Shown here: one piece after another, positions 7,602 through 50,806 of the stretch
How positions within the stretch are numbered: position 1 is the first letter of the stretch
Layout: every line of letters begins with the position of its first letter
DNA from: Rebecca billardiae RCC1528
Taxonomy: Eukaryota > Protista > Haptophyta
Assembly: GCA_965240325.2 (NCBI GenBank)
Contig: OZ251252.1
Location: 310,001-374,000, forward strand
Reading direction: 5' to 3'
DNA length: 64,000 nucleotides
Notes under the pieces: model-generated
Told to the model about the DNA's origin: nothing
The model's database searches: none
What the model saw: only the letters and a program-made list of their open reading frames with translations
Translations under genes and position numbers: made by a program

Positions 7602-10600
7602 ATGGAGGCCGAGCCCTCGCCCTCGGCGGCGGCGCCGCTCGCGACCGTGCTCGTCGAGTTCGTGCTGCCCAAGCCCATGCCCGCCCCCCTCGACGCCGCC
7701 GTCCACGCCCCGACCGGCACCGCGGGCGCGCGGTTTGTGGCAGAGCACACACGCGCGCGCGCCGCGCTCGGCGACGCGCTCGCTGGGCCGGCGCCCGCGC
7801 CGCAGCTCGAGGCGCTCGAGGCGTACATCCCGCTCGCGGCGCTCCTCGTCTCGCTTGACGACGCCCCCGGCGCGCTCGTCGACGGCGCGCGCCTGCCGAT
7901 CTTCCAGTGGACCTCAGCGCTCGGTGTGACGCGTGCGCGCGCGCGCCGCCGCCGCCGCCGCCGCCGCCGGCGGCGGCGCGCGGCGCATCCCGAGCGCGCG
8001 CGGTGTGTGCGCTCCTGTGCGGCGTGTGCGCTGCGCCGCGGCGGCGGGAGCCCCCGGATGCGCGCCCTCGCGCACACCCCCGCAGCTGCTCCGGCGCGCT
8101 CACAGCCGCCCGCCGCTGCGCCGGGCCGTGCGCGTGTGCGCGTGCGCGCGCCCCCGCTGCGACGCTCGCTCGCTCGTTGGGGTGTGGGCGCAGGCACGTC
8201 CGGCGCCGTGCTGGAGGGGGGCGCGCACTTCGAGCTGGCGATGTGCCTCGTCGCGCGCGCGCTCGCGCAGCTCAACGCTGCCGCCACGCGCGCCTCCGCC
8301 GCCCTCACCGCCGCGGAGCGCCTGGCCGCCGCCGACGCGTGCGCGCGCGCTCTCCGCGACGCCGCGGGCTGCCTTGAGTGCGCGCGCGGCGTGGCGGAGG
8401 CGGCGGCGGCGGCGGGTGGGAAGGCCATGCCGCAGGGTGTGGCGGAGGTCCACCCGCCCACGCTCGTCGCGCTCTCGCAGCTCTGTGTCGCGCTGGCCGG
8501 TGCGCGCGCCGCGCGGCGCGGCGCGCCCGCGCGCCCGCGGCCCCCGAGCCGCGCCAATGGTTTTATTGCGCGGCTGCGAGGTTTGTTTTTTGGGAAATCA
8601 AACGCTCCGGGGCGGCAGCATTCGTGTGCGCGCCTGCTTCTCACGCGGGCTCTGCTCGCGCGCGCAGCAGCCAGCGCGCTACCGTGGGCCTGCACACGCA
8701 CGCACGCGCGCGCGCGCCACGGCCGCCCGCCCTGTCGCCCGCCCTCACCGCCGCGTGCCCTGCTGCGTCGCGCGCGCCGCCCCCTCCGGCACACCGCGGC
8801 CGCGCCGACGACTGCACGGCGCTTCGGCGGGGGCGCGCGTGTGCGCAGGCGAGTGCGCCGTGTCCAAGGCGGAGCGGGTGCACACCTCCGCCGCAGCGGT
8901 CGCGATGATCCGCCAGGTGCGGCGCCGCGCCGCGCTCGAGATTGCAATCTCCCGCGCTCGAGATTGCAATCTCCCGCGCTCGAGAGTGCAATCTCCCGCG
9001 CGCGCGCGGCGGGGAGATTGCAACCCCCCTCCGCGCGCGAGGGCGACGGCGTGGGCCGCAGCGGCGCGCGCGGCGGTGCCCCCAGACCCTCCGGCGGAGA
9101 TTGCAATCTCCCCCGTGGCTCAGCCCCGCGCCCCCCTCCCCTACGCCGCCCCCGCCGCCCGCCGCGCGCGCCCTGCCCTGCCCTGGCCCTCAGGATGTGC
9201 GCGCGCGCGCCGCGGCCGCCGCGGCCGCGCTCGCCGCCGCGCCGGCGCTGCGCTCGCCTCTCGCCTGCTACGCCGAGCTGGTGGCGGCGCACGCGGCGCT
9301 CGCGCAACTCTCGGCGCTGGCGGAGGCGGCGCACGCGAAGGCGGAGCATGCGCACGCCCTAGGCTTCAGCATGGCTGCCGTGCGCGCCTCAGAGGTGCGT
9401 CTGCCGCCCGCCGCCCAACGCCCAACGCCCAACGCCCAACGGCCAACGCCTGGCCGCCCGCCGCCGCGCCGCGCGCCAACCGAGTGCCGCGCGTGTGCCT
9501 GACTCACGCCGCCACCGCCGCCGCCACCGCCGCCGCCACCGCCGCCGCGCACAGGGCCTGCCGTCGGTGGAAGCAGCGCTCGCGGCGCGCAGCACGGCAC
9601 CGTGCCTCCCGCCGCGCGGCGTGCGCCGCGCGCTCGCCCTCCGCGCCGCGCTCGACGCGAGCGCCGCCGCCGCGCGCGCGCGCGACGTGGCGTGGCGCGC
9701 CGAGAACGACCGGCTCTACTTCGAGGTGAGTACTAGTGACCTGCGGGCGCGATGCGCGCGCGCGGCCGGCGGTTACGCCGGCGGTTACGCGGGGCCGGCG
9801 GGGACGTTGGCGGCTTCTCCTCGCCGGGAGCGGGCGCACCGCGGGGCGCCTGCATGCGTGGCGCATGCGTGGCGCCGCCGCCGCCGCCGCGCACTGCACC
9901 ATACACACACGCACACACACCCGCGCGCGCGCGCGCGACACCGCGACAACAGGTGCCCACCGGCGTGGCGGCGCTGCGCTTCCCGCCGCCCAAGTGCATC
10001 ACGCCGCCCGAGCGGCCGCACCGCGCCGCGGACGCGCGCGAGCTGCACGAGCATGCGCCGCAGTGCGGCTATGCGGTTGACGAGATCAAGCTGCGGCCGG
10101 CGCGGCCCACAGAGACGGCAGCGGCGGGCGCGGCGGCGGGCGACGCGGCGGGTGGCGCAGCCGAGGCGGCGGGGCCGGCGGGCGGCGCGGGCGCGGCGGG
10201 CGCCGCCACGGCGGGGGGCGCGGCCCCGCCGGCCGCACCGCACGCCGCCGCCGCCGCCGCCGCCACTCCCGGCGGCGGCGGCGGCGCGGCCGTGGGCGGC
10301 GGCGCGGCGCCCGCGCCCACCGCAGCCGTCGAGCGATTCAGGGGGTTCAACTGGGAGGCGATGGCGGCGGGCCGCGCGTGGGCGCCCGTGCACGTGGGCT
10401 GGCTGAGCAAGCAGGGCGCGACGCGCGGCCTCCTCGCCGCATGGTCGTGGCAGGAGCGCCTGTTCGCGCTCTGCTCCGACGGGCGCCTCCGCTACTATCG
10501 CGTGCTCTCGCCCTCCGATCGCGTGCCGGAGGAGCGCGGCGCCGTCAACCTGCGCGCGGTCGCGGCGGTCGAGGCGAAGGGCAAGCGGCTCACGCTGCGC

Positions 10601-11831
10601 CCGATCGCGCCGGACGGCGGCGGCGGTGCCGAGGGCGCGGGTCGGCTGTACGTGCTCGAGGCGCAGCGGGACGTGGGCCTGTGGGAGGCCAAGCTCAGGG
10701 AGGTGCGGAGCTGCCGCGCCCCGCGCCCAGAGTGTACATTTGTACATTTGTACATTTGTACATTTGTACATTTGTACATTTGTACATTTGTACATTTGTA
10801 CATTGGTATCTGCTGCCGCATTGTACGCTGTGCTGCTGCGTTGTTTGTTGCTGCAAGTGTACTCTGTGTTGCATTGTCCGCAGTGCTGCATGGCGTTGGT
10901 GTATTGCGTGCACTGCCGTGCGCATCAGCGGCGCAGTGCTCGCTGGCGCAGTGCGCTGCCTTCCCCTCGCCCCCTGCCGCCAGCTGCTCCAGCCATGTGC
11001 TGTGGCTGGGTGGGTGCGGGGCCAGTCTCGGGCCCCGCTGCTGCGCTGCACTGTCTCTGCTGGCAGCACACTCTGCTGCCGCCGCATTGTATCGGCAGAG
11101 TGCGCCGCATTGTATCGACAGCACACTCTGCAGAGACACTGCGGCGGCGCACCCTGCTGCCGATACATCAAGTGGATCGGCAACGGAGTGCGCCGCCGCT
11201 GCTGCTGCCTGCCGGTTCGGGGGGGGGCGCCCCCCCAGCGCACCGCACACGCACACGCACAGGGGCCGGCTGCGAACGAGCGCGCGTGCGCGGCGCGCGC
11301 GCACTCATCCGGCCCCGGTGCCGTGCGTGCGCGCGCGGCGGCAACCCCAACGCTACCTCCAACCGCCCCAACCCCAAACCCCCAACCCTCACGGCTGCTG
11401 CGCAGATGCACGCGCACGTGCACGCACTCGCGGCGGGCGGCGCGGCGGCGGCGGCTGGCGGCGCGGCGGGCGGCGCGGCCTCGGGCGCGGCGGCGACAGC
11501 ACAGCTCGCGCCGCCCGCGCCGCTGCCCGCCGCCGCGTCGGCCGACGCCGCGACCGACAGCGACGACTACGACGACGACGACACGGCCGTCGGCGACGGC
11601 GCGGCGGGCGGCGGCGCTCCGAGCGCCGTCGCCGCCGCCGCCGGCGACGGCGGCGGCGGCGCCGGGCCCGCGGCCGCCGCGGACAGCGGCGGCGGCGGCG
11701 GCGGCGCCGCCGTCACACCGTGGGAATGTGAGGCATGCACGTTCGTGAACCGCAAGCGCTCCAACGTGTGCGCGCTGTGCCGGAACGCGCAGCGCAACTA
11801 CCCGGACCTGCCGATGGGGCCGCTGGGCGGC

Positions 11832-11901
<70 letters not shown>

Positions 11902-14082
11902 AGGGGGCAGGGGCGGCGGGCGCGGGCGCGGCGGCGGCTGCGCGCGGCTCTGCGGGCGCGCTGCCGGCGCCGCCCTCGCCCGCCCGCTGCGCGGCACCCT
12001 CAGCCACCACCGCCGCCACCGCCGCGGCCACTGCATCCACCTTGCCGCCGCCCGCCGCCCGCGCCCCCTCCGACGCCCTCGCCGCCTCCAACGCCGCCGC
12101 CACCGTCTCCGCCGCTGCCGAGCCTGACGAATACTGCTGCCCGCTGTCGCTCGAGCCGATGCGCGATCCGGTGATGCTCGTCGAGTCCGGGCAGACGTTC
12201 GAGCGCGAGAACATCGAGCTGTGGCTACGGCAGCACGTGCGCGCGGCGCGCGGCATGCGCGCGGGTGCGCGGGGCTGGATGCGCGGTGGGGCGGGGCGGC
12301 GCGTGCGCGCGTGCGTGAGTGTGCGTGCGTGGGTGTGCGTGTGTGTGCGTGTGTATGCGTGTGTGTGGCCGTTTGCGCGCGCGCGCGAGGAGGACCAGAC
12401 GGACAGACCCGCACGCCCGAGTCTGCCCCAGCGCTGCGCCGCGCGCGCTCTGCCGCGCACCGCCATCGCCGCCCGTGCGCACGCGCTCACACGGAGCGAG
12501 CGCGCGGCACCCGGCGTGCACGCCGCGCGCCGACGAGCCAACCGCCGGCCATGGCGCGCCCATGCCCGCCCCTCGCTTCCCCGCCCGCCCCCGCGTACGC
12601 TCCCGACCCCAACCCTCACCCCTCGCCAGTCCGAGTGCCCCGTCACCAAGATCGGCCTGGCCTCGAAGCAGCTCGTCCCCAACTATGCTTTGCGCGGCGT
12701 GATTGAAGCATGGCGCGCGGAGCGGGCCGCGGCGGCCGGCGGCGGCGGCGGCGGTGGCGGGAATGGGAATGGCGGTGGTGGCGTTGGCGGTGGCGGCGGG
12801 CGGGTGGGCGCGGCTGCGCTCGGCGGCGCGGCAGGCAGCGTGGCCGCGGCCAACGCGCCACCTCCGGGCTTCAGCGCGCAGCCGCTCCCGCCGCCGCCGC
12901 CGCCGCCACCGGCGATGGGCGCCGCCGACGCGTCAGCCGCCGCGCCGCCGCCGCAGCCGCAGCCGCCGACGCCGACACCGCCGCAGCCCGCGCCTGCGCC
13001 GCAGGGCGGCGGTGGCGGCGCGCTGCACTGGGTGACGCAGCCGCTCGCCTGGCTCGCCGGCGCCGCCACCGCCGACGACGGCCCCGCCGCCCAAAGCGGC
13101 ACGGCCGTCGCGCCGCCGCCAACCGCCGCCGCCGCCGCGCCGCCCTCGCCGGTGAGCCGCCTGACAGACCTCGGGTTTAGTCGGGAGCATGCGCGCTCGG
13201 CGCTGCACTGGGCGGGCGGCGACGTGGACAGGGCGGCCGACCGGCTGCTCACCGGCGGGGGCGGCACGGACGAGGGCGGGACCGTCGCGCAGCCGGGCGG
13301 CGCGCCCACGCCGCCGCCCGCAGCCACCGCAGCCACCGCAGCCACAGCCACCGCCGCCGCCACAGCCGCCGCCGCTCAGGGCTCGGGCGAAGATGAGCTT
13401 CCGCCGGGGTGGGAGCAGCGCTCCGCCCCCGACGGCCGCGCGTACTACGTCGACCACAGCACGCGCACCACGCACTGGGAGCGCCCGCGCCCGCCGCCGC
13501 ACGCGGGCCCGCACCTCTCCGCAGCGGCGGTGCAGCAGCTGACTGAACTCGGCTTCAGCCGGCCGCGCGCCGAGGCGGCGCTGCGGCGCGCGGGAGGCGA
13601 CGTGGGCGGCGCGGCGGAGGCGCTGCTCGGCGAAGACGGCGGTGGCGGTGGTGGCGGTGGCCCGCCGGTGGTCGCGGCCACGCCCGCCGCGCGCCCGGCG
13701 CACGCCGCCCACGCTGCCACCGCCACGCCCGTCGCCGCCGCCACCGCCGCCGCCGCCACCGCCGAGCAGCCGCCGCTGGGCTGGGAGCAGCGCTTCGCTC
13801 AGGACGGGCGCACCTACTGTAAGCGCTGCGGCCGCGCGCCGCGGCACCTGCCCGCCCGAGCGAGCGACGGCGCGAAACTGCGTGCCAGGGTGTGCGCGCG
13901 CGGCTGCTGCGCGCGCAGTCCACGGGCTGACAGCCTTGGCTCCACCCGCCCGCGCTCTGCGCCCCGCGCCCGCGCCCGCGCCGCCACCGCCGCCCGGCCG
14001 GCTGGGCGCAGGGGTCGACCACAACACGCGCACCACGCACTGGGAGCCGCCTTGGCTGCTCGCCCGCCGCGGGCAGCGCTGA
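7602..14082 (+). CDS. Multidomain protein BRO1-PH-NZF/RanBP2 ZnF-U-box-UBA-WW-UBA-WW, ~1302 aa (exons 7602-7923, 8194-8499, 8849-8916, 9194-9394, 9555-9725, 9953-10702, 11406-12236, 12630-13818, 14012-14082)
   Basis: BRO1: [30 protein letters not shown]: [27 protein letters not shown]: [15 protein letters not shown]-box: [32 protein letters not shown]. Two UBA (LGFSR..AL..GGDV..A..LL) and two WW domains. All eight introns are GT-AG and phase-compatible; total 3909 nt. Confidence 0.8.
8931..9110. repeat. Intronic repeats of the 14-bp palindrome GAGATTGCAATCTC (22-bp tandem unit x3 plus 2 dispersed copies)
   Basis: Copies at 8938, 8960, 8982, 9014 and 9097. Confidence 0.9.
10733..10804. repeat. 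(TGTACATT)9 intronic minisatellite
   Basis: Nine perfect 8-mers with a palindromic TGTACA core. Confidence 0.95.
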
Positions 14083-14828
14083 ACGCGCACCGCCCCGCCT
14101 GGCTGCAATGCTAGGCCGCAACTACTAGACGGTGCCACCGAGTGACCGGACGGTAGTGAAGCCCCGGAGTAGTGGACTCACTGAGTGGAGGCGCGCGGCC
14201 CCGCGGGCCTGCGGGCACCGCCACACCTGAGGACTCACCTGACGGTCCGCGCGAGGCCGGCGGCGCCCTGCGCGCCACTAGGCCTGCGTGCGGGCGGCAC
14301 TGCGCCGCCCGCGTGGCCGCGTGGCGCATGATATGCTCAGCTCAGGCCGTAACGTGCTGCCTGCTGGCCGCCCGATTACGTACCGACTACCGGATGATAC
14401 AGTATACACTTCCTGGGCGCCGCAGACCGCCGCTATTGTGAATATCGCGTAGCAGTCGCGATCAGCATTGTCATAGTCATGATGATGATATACATGACTC
14501 ACTGCAGCGGCGCCTGGCGGCGGGACGCGTCTGCGTCTCTCGCCGCGGCTGCCGCACCAGCTGGCGGTCCGCCGATGTCTGATCGGTTCGTTGCGGAGCG
14601 AGTATACTGCAGTCACTCTCACGTCTCTGTCTGGACCGGAGTAGCAGCATGGACAAAGTGTACACATGGCGCACGCGTCGAACACGGGTGCAGATGGTGT
14701 GTGCATGCGCCGCCATCGGCGACGCCCATTCCACGGTGCATGGCCCCGCCCGGCGAGCTGCCCGCCCGCGCGCGCGTGCGAGCGCCGCCGCCGCCGCCGC
14801 CGCGGGCGGCCGCCCAGCGGCGCCCGCG

Positions 14829-48439: not shown

Positions 48440-50806
48440 ATGGCGACCGCCGTCGGCCGCCGCGCGCTGCTAGCGGCGCTGGCGTGGGGCTACGCGTGCG
48501 CGCGGCCGCACGCGGCGCCGAACAGCACCTCCGCGCCCGACGCGCGGCTCAACGTGCTGCACATCGTCGCGCACGACCTCCGCGCCGACTTTGACGGGCC
48601 GAACACGCGCGCGCTCGCGCGCGAGGGCGCGCGCTTTGCGCTCGCGTTCTCCAACGCGCCCTTCTGCGCGCCGAGCCGGCACTCGTTCCTCACTGGCCGC
48701 CGGCCCGCGGTCACGCGGGTCCACACCTTCGTCCGCCGCGACGATGAGGCGCGCTGGACCTCGCTCCCGCGCGCGTTTCGAGACGCGGGCTACGCCACCG
48801 CCACGGTCGGATTCTCGACCGGATTTGCATGCACGGGCTGCTGGTCGCAGCCGGAGGTCGCGGTGATGCGCGGGTGCCACTCGTGCCCGCAGGCGGACCA
48901 CGTGGCGGCGCGCACGGCGGGGCGGCTGATCACCGACTGGGCGCGCGCGAACGCCGGCGCGGGCGCACCCGACGGCGCGCACGGCGGGCGGCGGCGCGCG
49001 GCCCAACGCGCGGAGCGCCGCTGGGGCGGTGGGCCGGGCGGTGGCGCCGCCGCCGCCGCCGCGTCGCTCGTGCACCCCGAGCCGTCGGCGCTGCCCCCCG
49101 CGCAGCCGTGGTACCTGCTCGTCGGCTTCGTCGGCGGGCACCTGCCCCACGTCGTGCCGGAGGCGGCGAGCGCCGCCGCGGGGCAAAGGCTGCGCCGCGC
49201 CATTGCGGCGGCGACGCACACGCGGCCGGCGGGAGGAGGTGGCGCCATCTCGGCGGAGGCGAGATTGCGGCCGGCGGGAGGAGGTGCGACGTCGTCGGGC
49301 GCGCCGCTGTGCCGGCTGCGCCCGCCGAGCGGCGCGCACGCGCACACCGTGCCCGCGCCCTCGCGCCAGCGCGTGTGGCGGCCCGGCCAGCGCCTCCGCG
49401 CCCTCCGCGACGCGCTCGCAGCCTACGCGCACCTCGACGCCGCCCTCGGCCTCCTGCTCCGCGCGGCGCGCGGCGCGCCTGGCGGCGTGTACGAGCGGCG
49501 CACCGTGGTCTGCTTCCACGCGGACCACGGCCTCTCCGTGGGCGAGTACGGCGTACCCGGGAAGAAGGGCAAGCTGCTCGACGTGGACACGCGTGTGCCC
49601 CTCGTCCTGCGCGTGCCCCCGCCGCTGCCGCCGCCAACGGGGGTGCCCGTGGCGCCGTCGGCCGCGTGGCGTGGCGCACCGCGACGGCTCACGCCCCTCG
49701 CGGCCGCGCGCGGCGGGGACGGCGGTGGCACCGCCGACGACGGCATGGGATGGTCGAGCGGTGGCGCGGGCGGCGAGGGCGGCGGTCGCACCGCCGCCGG
49801 CGGGTTGCGCGTGCCGAGCGGTGGCGCGGGCGGCGAGGGCGGCGGCGACGGGCCAGGGCGCGTGGTCTGGTCGGAGGTGGTCGAGCTCGTGGACGTGTAC
49901 CCGACGCTGCTCTGTGCCGCGCTGCAGGGCGTTGGCAGCGGCGGCGCCGTCCCCAGATCGCAATCTCGAACTGCTCCCCGCGCCCAGGGCGCGCGCGGCG
50001 CGTGGCAAAGCGCCGCCGCCGCGGACGGCGACGGCGCGTGCGGCGGCGGCGGCGCGTGGCGCCGGTCGGAGCCGCCGCTCGCCGGTCGATCGCTGCTGCC
50101 GCTGCTGCTGCGCGCGCAGGCGGGCGCGGCAGGCGGCGTCGAGGGCGCGCCGGCGCACGCCGCGCACGCCGACGGCGCCGCGCGCGCCGAGATCGCAATC
50201 TCGTCCACCAACCCGCGCGCCCAGATCGCAATCTCGACCTACCCGCGCTGCCCCATGCACGGCGGCAAGGACTGGGCGTGCCGCCGCGCGTGGGACGGTC
50301 GGATCGAGGTGATGGGCACGAGCGTGCGCACGGCGCACTGGCGGTATGTGATCTGGGCGCCGTGGGTACGGAGCGGCGGCGGCGAGGTGGCTGCCGCCGC
50401 CGGTGGCAACCGCTCCGCGGCGTCCGGGTATGCGCACGCCCCGGACTTTGGTGCGCACGCCCCGGACTTTGGTGCGCACGCCCCGGACTTTGGCGCGCAC
50501 GCCCCGGACTTTGGTGCGCGCGGCTGCTGCGCGGAGGAGCTGTACTTCTACCCGGCGGGCCTCTACTCCGACGAGTCCCGGCACAGCACCGGCGGCGGGT
50601 ACCGATGGCCCGCGCTCGACTTGGCCGTTGAGACGGCCAACGTCGCCAGCGCACACCCCCAGGTGGCGCGCGCGCTGCGGAGGGTCGCGGTCGCGTCGTG
50701 GGGGCGCGCGCACGCGCTGGAGGGCGGCGAGCGGCCGAGGCCAGTGCCGTTGCCGCCGGAGGTCATGTCGCCTGCTGGCTCTGCCGCGCTCACGCCGATG
50801 GGCTGA
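48440..50806 (+). CDS. Secreted formylglycine-type sulfatase, iduronate-2-sulfatase-like
   Basis: Signal peptide; NVLHIVAHDLR; CAPSRHSFLTGRRP (CxPxR); HLPH; ADHGLSVGE..KGKL..TRVPL; VELVDVYPTL; STYPRCP; MGTSVRT..WRY; ELY. Confidence 0.85.
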   Translation: MATAVGRRALLAALAWGYACARPHAAPNSTSAPDARLNVLHIVAHDLRADFDGPNTRALAREGARFALAFSNAPFCAPSRHSFLTGRRPAVTRVHTFVRRDDEARWTSLPRAFRDAGYATATVGFSTGFACTGCWSQPEVAVMRGCHSCPQADHVAARTAGRLITDWARANAGAGAPDGAHGGRRRAAQRAERRWGGGPGGGAAAAAASLVHPEPSALPPAQPWYLLVGFVGGHLPHVVPEAASAAAGQRLRRAIAAATHTRPAGGGGAISAEARLRPAGGGATSSGAPLCRLRPPSGAHAHTVPAPSRQRVWRPGQRLRALRDALAAYAHLDAALGLLLRAARGAPGGVYERRTVVCFHADHGLSVGEYGVPGKKGKLLDVDTRVPLVLRVPPPLPPPTGVPVAPSAAWRGAPRRLTPLAAARGGDGGGTADDGMGWSSGGAGGEGGGRTAAGGLRVPSGGAGGEGGGDGPGRVVWSEVVELVDVYPTLLCAALQGVGSGGAVPRSQSRTAPRAQGARGAWQSAAAADGDGACGGGGAWRRSEPPLAGRSLLPLLLRAQAGAAGGVEGAPAHAAHADGAARAEIAISSTNPRAQIAISTYPRCPMHGGKDWACRRAWDGRIEVMGTSVRTAHWRYVIWAPWVRSGGGEVAAAAGGNRSAASGYAHAPDFGAHAPDFGAHAPDFGAHAPDFGARGCCAEELYFYPAGLYSDESRHSTGGGYRWPALDLAVETANVASAHPQVARALRRVAVASWGRAHALEGGERPRPVPLPPEVMSPAGSAALTPMG
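50432..50519 (+). repeat. In-frame 21-bp tandem repeat (AHAPDFG)x4 in the sulfatase
   Basis: GCGCACGCCCCGGACTTTGG(T/C) x4. Confidence 0.9.

Follow-up and report, generated by a model that had tools for sequence, protein, structure and literature searches.

In yeast and animals, Bro1/ALIX proteins, Rsp5/NEDD4 ubiquitin ligases and the ubiquitin-binding subunits of the endosomal sorting (ESCRT) complexes are separate proteins that physically interact. Their domains have established partners: Bro1 domains bind ESCRT-III subunits (for ALIX and Bro1p, the C-terminal helix of Snf7/CHMP4), PH domains bind phosphoinositides, NZF fingers and UBA domains bind ubiquitin, WW domains bind PPxY-type motifs, and the U-box docks an E2 enzyme carrying ubiquitin. 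Here we describe a locus in the haptophyte Rebecca billardiae RCC1528 that appears to encode all of these domains together. It lies on the + strand at 7602–14082 of a 64,000-nucleotide stretch of contig OZ251252.1 (hereafter the window; GC content 73.7%), and most probably represents one gene of nine exons. The predicted protein is arranged, from the N-terminus, as a Bro1-like domain, an Ala/Gly linker, a PH domain, a further linker, an NZF finger, a (Gly-Ala)n linker, a U-box, a Gly/Pro linker and a UBA-WW-UBA-WW module. We propose, with a probability of roughly one half, that this one gene encodes a membrane- or endosome-associated U-box E3 ubiquitin ligase or adaptor linked to ESCRT-III.

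Each of the closest described systems shares part of this layout. Like the model, ALIX (PDCD6IP), yeast Bro1p and plant ALIX have an N-terminal Bro1 domain of ~360–380 amino acids, and ALIX-type proteins also bind ubiquitin. However, the model has neither their V domain (ALIX_LYPXL_bnd; no Pfam match in exon 6) nor their proline-rich tail, and its residues ~400–480 are an Ala/Gly low-complexity linker. Moreover, downstream of its Bro1-like domain come PH, NZF, U-box, UBA and WW domains, none of which is present in ALIX/Bro1p. HD-PTP (PTPN23), which binds CHMP4B, STAM2 and UBAP1, offers a precedent for a Bro1 domain heading a large multi-domain enzyme. It has V and phosphatase domains, while BROX consists of a Bro1 domain and a CAAX tail; unlike the model, neither carries E3 or ubiquitin-binding modules. 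With the C2-WW-HECT ligases NEDD4 and Rsp5, the model shares the logic of combining a lipid-binding domain, WW domains and an E3 module, and short stretches of its first WW domain match those of NEDD4-type proteins at up to 75% identity. In contrast to these ligases, it has a U-box, an adaptor that docks an E2, as its E3 module and not a HECT domain, which forms a thioester intermediate; its candidate lipid module is PH rather than C2; the order is reversed, with the WW domains at the C-terminus; and no exon gave a HECT match in Pfam. Vps36 of ESCRT-II, with its PH-like phosphoinositide-binding domain and NZF ubiquitin-binding finger, resembles the model with its candidate PH domain and NZF finger. 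The NZF fingers of yeast Vps36 sit inside its GLUE domain, whereas the finger of the model lies ~105 residues downstream of PH, and the EAP30/winged-helix core of ESCRT-II is missing (no EAP30 match in Pfam). The model also shares a canonical U-box with ligases such as CHIP, UFD2, PRP19 and the plant PUBs, but no U-box family in which Bro1, PH, NZF, UBA or WW partners are arranged in this way is known to us, and a literature search turned up none. As judged from its predicted domains, the protein is thus like a merger of Bro1/ALIX, Vps36 (PH and NZF) and Rsp5/NEDD4, and, because it lacks the V domain, the EAP30 core and HECT, a member of none of the three families.

The nine exons give a coding sequence (CDS) of 3909 nt, corresponding to 1302 amino acids and a stop codon. 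Introns 1–8 are all of the GT-AG type, with phases that are consistent across the whole model. Since all six frames of this GC-rich DNA contain spurious open reading frames (ORFs) that are hundreds of codons long, the meaningful coding signal is the asymmetry between codon positions: GC content at third positions (GC3) is 0.88–0.95 in each of the nine exons, compared with 0.55–0.74 at second positions, and the introns are without codon periodicity. Domains that span several exons were examined through exon pieces, stop-free read-throughs or a relative of the N-terminal part, P0001, rather than through the full spliced protein. Splice signals, phases, Pfam matches and fold matches collectively support the exon structure and the domain list of the original prediction, which described eight domains joined by phase-compatible GT-AG introns.

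The N-terminal ~380 residues are predicted to be a divergent Bro1-like domain. It begins in exon 1 (7602–7923; GC3 0.94), which contains the start codon at 7602 and an F-x-W motif at 7902–7910, continues through exons 2 (8194–8499), 3 (8849–8916) and 4 (9194–9394) into its C-terminal part in exon 5 (9555–9725), where an ENDRLY motif is found at 9702–9719, and ends in exon 6 (9953–10702; GC3 0.94). When exon 1, intron 1 and exon 2, read through, were used as the query of a complete HMMER search in 1.84 billion protein representatives, P0001 was the sole relative (E 4e-36). P0001 is the 329-residue product of a 2.2-kb ENA assembly contig, L001; it is truncated at residue 324, as L001 ends in a Nextera adapter, and covers the model up to about residue 335. 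It is intron-free and 58% identical to the model, reaching 59% in exon 1, with which it is collinear, and 61% in exon 4, and it also aligns along exon 3. The junctions 1/2, 2/3, 3/4 and 4/5 are all crossed without a gap, providing independent confirmation of introns 1–4.

Both profile and fold comparisons of P0001 support the Bro1 assignment. P0001 matched Pfam BRO1 (PF03097) with an E value of 5e-7 over positions 38–226 of the 385 in the profile, at 29.4 bits against a cutoff of 35.1. The elongated, all-helical (TPR-like) Bro1 fold was likewise assessed on P0001 and not on the window's own spliced sequence. The ESM Atlas model of P0001 (predicted TM score 0.82) superposed on BRO1 clusters with TM scores of 0.76–0.79 over 286–296 residues, and 30 of its 40 neighbours by Atlas features were BRO1 families. 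An AF2 model built from a shallow multiple sequence alignment, with a mean predicted local distance difference test (pLDDT) score of 58, gave Bro1 domains for all of its 16 best PDB entries (BROX, HD-PTP, ALIX and Bro1p), with Z scores of 11.1–13.9 and 234–262 residues aligned; the next, unrelated match had Z 10.8 over 130 residues. HD-PTP and BROX were the best of these (3uly, 5mjz, 3um3 and 3rau; Z 13.2–13.9), with ALIX (2oew, 3c3o) and Bro1p (1zb1) also among them. Sequence searches against PDB, using phmmer with P0001 and an alignment profile, found chance matches only and no Bro1 chain, and a metagenome scan with P0001 gave no match. It had been named beforehand as a possible refutation that the N-terminus might fail to model as a BRO1 fold; by way of P0001, the region did model as one.

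Contig L001 also carries an adenosine-deaminase/editase ORF (L001:1-948; A_deamin, E 3.5e-25), 257 nt upstream of the P0001 ORF (L001:1206-2195) and on the same strand, both being intron-free. In a comparison of synteny, a tblastn search of the window found no counterpart of the A_deamin gene. L001 is probably a transcript assembly merging neighbouring genes.

Downstream of the Bro1-like domain and the Ala/Gly-rich linker, exon 6 encodes a candidate PH domain (PF00169) at ~10391–10702. The ten best named matches to exon 6 by ESM Atlas features were all PH families, with scores of 0.81–0.89 that we treat as leads, and the region has predicted strands followed by a C-terminal helix, a PH-like pattern. 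No relatives of the PH region were found by word search or in a metagenome scan. Exon 7 (11406–12236) opens with a low-complexity linker, followed by an NZF/RanBP2-type zinc finger (Zn_ribbon_RanBP, PF00641) at 11718–11801, which also matched Vps36-NZF-N of Pfam weakly (E 9.5e-3). Within it, at 11721–11780, the W-x-C-x2-C-x3-N-x6-C-x2-C spacing is exact, Thr-Phe directly follows Cys2, and a Leu lies between Cys3 and Cys4. This Thr-Phe and hydrophobic signature reportedly marks ubiquitin binding in NZF fingers of the Npl4/TAB2 type, in work by Alam et al. from 2004. The finger carries the signature and is therefore a predicted ubiquitin binder. A YPDL motif resembling YPxL late domains directly follows the finger, at 11799–11810, and may be due to chance; the protein is without a V domain able to bind it in cis.

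The U-box (PF04564) is split by intron 7 exactly between exons 7 and 8. Its first half, from ~12123 in exon 7, scored 34 bits (E 3.4e-8; cutoff 21.4) over profile positions 2–37, and its second half, extending to ~12728 in exon 8 (12630–13818), scored 16.9 bits over positions 41–71. The core residues are intact, including CP-[ILV]-S, DPV, G-x-T-[FY]-E-R, the Trp, CP-x-T and L-x-PN. By these features the protein qualifies as a U-box E3, with ligase activity predicted. The remainder of exon 8 encodes UBA1 (13146–13259), WW1 (13398–13490), UBA2 (13524–13634) and, from 13770 onwards, the beginning of WW2. The two UBA stretches together gave 59 bits (PF00627; E 3.8e-16) and the two WW stretches 57.5 bits (PF00397; E 1.3e-15), both above cutoff. 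WW2 is completed by exon 9 (14012–14082; stop codon at 14080–14082), which supplies WW profile positions 19–31, with the WW tryptophan re-formed at the phase-1 junction. The split U-box and WW domains are rebuilt cleanly across introns 7 and 8, which confirms both introns. The UBA-WW unit (13146–14055) is a tandem duplication: across 111 positions, linker included, the two copies are 63% identical, with an alignment score of 277, compared with 57 ± 9.5 in shuffles. An intron is present in the second WW domain only, implying that an intron was gained or lost after the duplication.

Whether the N- and C-terminal modules belong to one chain depends on the predicted exon 6/7 junction, which is supported by intrinsic sequence features. 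The original prediction had pointed to this place as its weak link, naming the 703-nt intron 6 (10703–11405) and the ATG at the start of the next exon, and both features were seen. Intron 6 is the longest in the model (the others are 160–393 nt) and the least GC-rich (0.65 compared with 0.77–0.84), exon 7 opens exactly with ATG, and a near-perfect (TGTACATT)9.5 microsatellite, rich in UGUA, occupies 10733–10808, 30 nt past the exon 6 donor. These observations count against a single chain and would suit two transcription units, namely a Bro1-PH gene of exons 1–6 and an NZF-U-box-UBA-WW-UBA-WW ligase gene starting from the ATG at 11406, or else a promoter within intron 6 giving a short ligase isoform beside the full-length protein. 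The composition of intron 6 is like that of the flank after the stop codon, and UGUA-rich arrays occur in some elements of 3′ untranslated regions and polyadenylation sites. The genome is also probably compact, if it is like that of Diacronema lutheri (Pavlovales), with 73.25% GC and 14,446 genes in 43.5 Mb (PMC8379373). Nevertheless, we consider these arrangements improbable; the split into two genes had been named beforehand as another possible refutation, and the lack of stop codons in the interval speaks against it. TAA, TAG and TGA are absent from all + frames between 10404 and 11729, a stretch of 1325 nt at GC 0.73 that is the second longest of its kind in the window. It follows that an ORF leaving exon 6 stays open at least as far as exon 7, and a separate upstream gene would have no stop unless it overlapped the downstream CDS by at least 320 nt. 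Within intron 6, 15 stop trinucleotides were expected and none is present; none of its 78 TG dinucleotides is followed by A, none of its 17 TA dinucleotides by A or G, and 0 of 2000 shuffles were stop-free.

The borders of intron 6 also resemble those of the other introns, which is again unfavourable to two units. Its donor, GTGCGG, is that of intron 3, its acceptor, GCGCAG, is shared with introns 1, 2 and 8, the exons on either side meet it in phase 0, and coding periodicity begins at 11406 and not earlier. The acceptor is preceded by the 13-mer CCCCAACCCTCAC at 11380–11392; the only other copy in the window is at 12607–12619, and the two copies are placed 10–14 nt upstream of the predicted acceptors of introns 6 and 7, respectively. 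The 13-mer contains a branch-site-like CTCAC and looks like a shared cassette of a branch site and a C/A tract. These data collectively favour a single nine-exon gene over two. It is far less probable still that the locus is non-functional, that is, decaying or mis-assembled, with its open frames being by-products of 74–80% GC. Very long spurious ORFs do occur on both strands across the region, and the composition of the model is skewed, with Ala making up 28% of residues and Ala, Gly and Pro together half. Against such an origin, codon-position asymmetry is strong in all exons and in no intron, six Pfam domains are intact, two of them rebuilt exactly across introns, and P0001 preserves the sequence, being 58% identical and collinear across the exon junctions.

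Some further observations were made on the introns. Introns 2 and 3, like intron 6, are without stops in all three frames. Intron 6 contains a hairpin cluster at 11060–11215, with a minimum free energy of −81.9 kcal/mol (z −4.6 relative to dinucleotide shuffles), and is the only part of the locus with Rfam matches, which are sub-threshold and miRNA-precursor-like (e.g., mir-5366 on the minus strand at 11137–11203, with 32.5 bits and E 7e-4). A transposable-element origin of intron 6 was considered and rejected, as blastn against the window gave no other copy.

The original prediction regarded the gene as a lineage-specific fusion, and the distribution of its parts agrees with this: the N-terminal domain has one relative in 1.84 billion representatives, and the word searches found no other protein with the C-terminal architecture. 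A word search with residues 261–1064 of the stop-free ORF at 10626–14111 returned no relatives, probably because it was swamped by low-complexity words. The UBA-WW-UBA region returned only C2-WW-HECT ligases, matched through WW alone, and an ESM Atlas search with exon 8 gave no usable match. The literature searches turned up no account of an architecture joining Bro1 to a U-box or to WW. Two Atlas clusters come closest, one annotated as BRO1-like/UBA in Haptophyta (~465 amino acids) and one as BRO1, ALIX V and UBA in Bacillariophyta (~848 amino acids). They provide a precedent, in haptophytes and diatoms, for a Bro1 domain followed by ubiquitin binders. Both share the Bro1-UBA fusion with the model and come from the same or neighbouring algal lineages, but they list no U-box, WW, PH or NZF, and their resemblance to P0001 is by features (0.86) or fold only. 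The family appears, from these searches, to be confined to one small algal lineage.

Based on the established roles of these domain families elsewhere, we propose a plausible mechanism for the protein as an E3 adaptor. The WW domains would recruit cargo or adaptors through proline motifs, and the U-box would bring in an E2 carrying ubiquitin, by which the WW-bound cargo or adaptors could be ubiquitinated. The NZF finger and both UBA domains would hold the resulting ubiquitin chains, while attachment to a phosphoinositide membrane would be provided by PH. Finally, the Bro1-like domain may dock on an ESCRT-III subunit of the Snf7/CHMP4 type, such that ubiquitination and hand-over to ESCRT-III would be combined in one chain. 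A more far-reaching version is rather doubtful. In it, a pavlovophyte-type haptophyte would have packed into one polypeptide all that lies in the upstream half of the multivesicular-body pathway (lipid binding, PPxY cargo choice, ubiquitination, ubiquitin holding, and direct recruitment or nucleation of ESCRT-III), bypassing or replacing ESCRT-0, -I and -II and the NEDD4-type ligases.

Several results weigh against the ESCRT-linked ligase. No Pfam BRO1 match was obtained on the window's own exon pieces or on the read-through of exon 1, intron 1 and exon 2, and the BRO1 score on P0001, while significant, is under the Pfam gathering score. The PH match (21.3 bits, E 4e-4) covers profile positions 2–58 only and falls under the cutoff of 25.1, and the zinc finger, at 21.8 bits (E 1.1e-4), is under its 27-bit cutoff. 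For the PH region, AF2 run on a single sequence gave a model with a pLDDT of 48, which led Foldseek to kinases and chaperones at E > 0.03 and was discarded as uninformative. The word searches and metagenome scans yielded no full-length orthologue that would unite both halves of the model in a single chain. In addition, Bro1 domains have other partners too, for example in rhophilin, BROX and PalC. It is consequently possible, although we think it somewhat unlikely, that a single gene exists here with no ESCRT hand-over. As in rhophilin, BROX or PalC-like proteins, the Bro1-like domain would then serve as a helical scaffold of a generic kind or as a module for binding partners. It would be attached to a U-box E3 for another process, such as protein quality control or membrane signalling, that gained WW, UBA and NZF by promiscuous shuffling. 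The high divergence of the Bro1-like domain (sub-threshold in Pfam, no Bro1 chain of PDB by phmmer, one relative) and the lack of a V domain or proline-rich tail of the ALIX/Bro1p type are in keeping with this. However, the model brings together the PH and NZF pairing of Vps36, a Bro1 domain and the Rsp5/NEDD4-like pairing of WW with an E3, all of which are tied to endosomal sorting in opisthokonts; the BRO1-UBA fusions of haptophytes and diatoms, moreover, fit the idea that Bro1 and ubiquitin binding are linked in a conserved way. On balance, the E3 adaptor linked to ESCRT-III is the reading that we prefer.

While each of the domains is well known, the joining of Bro1 to an E3 ligase and WW domains was not found in the databases or literature searched. 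Because the counterparts in yeast and animals are separate, physically interacting proteins, the natural fusion represents Rosetta-stone-type evidence that Bro1, E3 and ubiquitin-binding activities operate on the same substrate and in the same place. ESCRT-0 is, to our knowledge, restricted to opisthokonts, and the gene may offer a compact system for studying how the ubiquitination of cargo is tied to the recruitment of ESCRT-III in a lineage that is not expected to have ESCRT-0. Its significance is limited by the familiarity of the parts and an apparently narrow algal lineage, and the gene is a prediction from sequence.

A minor feature of the locus is a perfect 14-nt palindrome, GAGATTGCAATCTC, that occurs four times in intron 3 (8938–9110). 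Three of these copies form a 22-nt tandem array, and one of the four has one mismatch. With zero copies expected by chance in the window, a fifth, also with one mismatch, is present at 50189.

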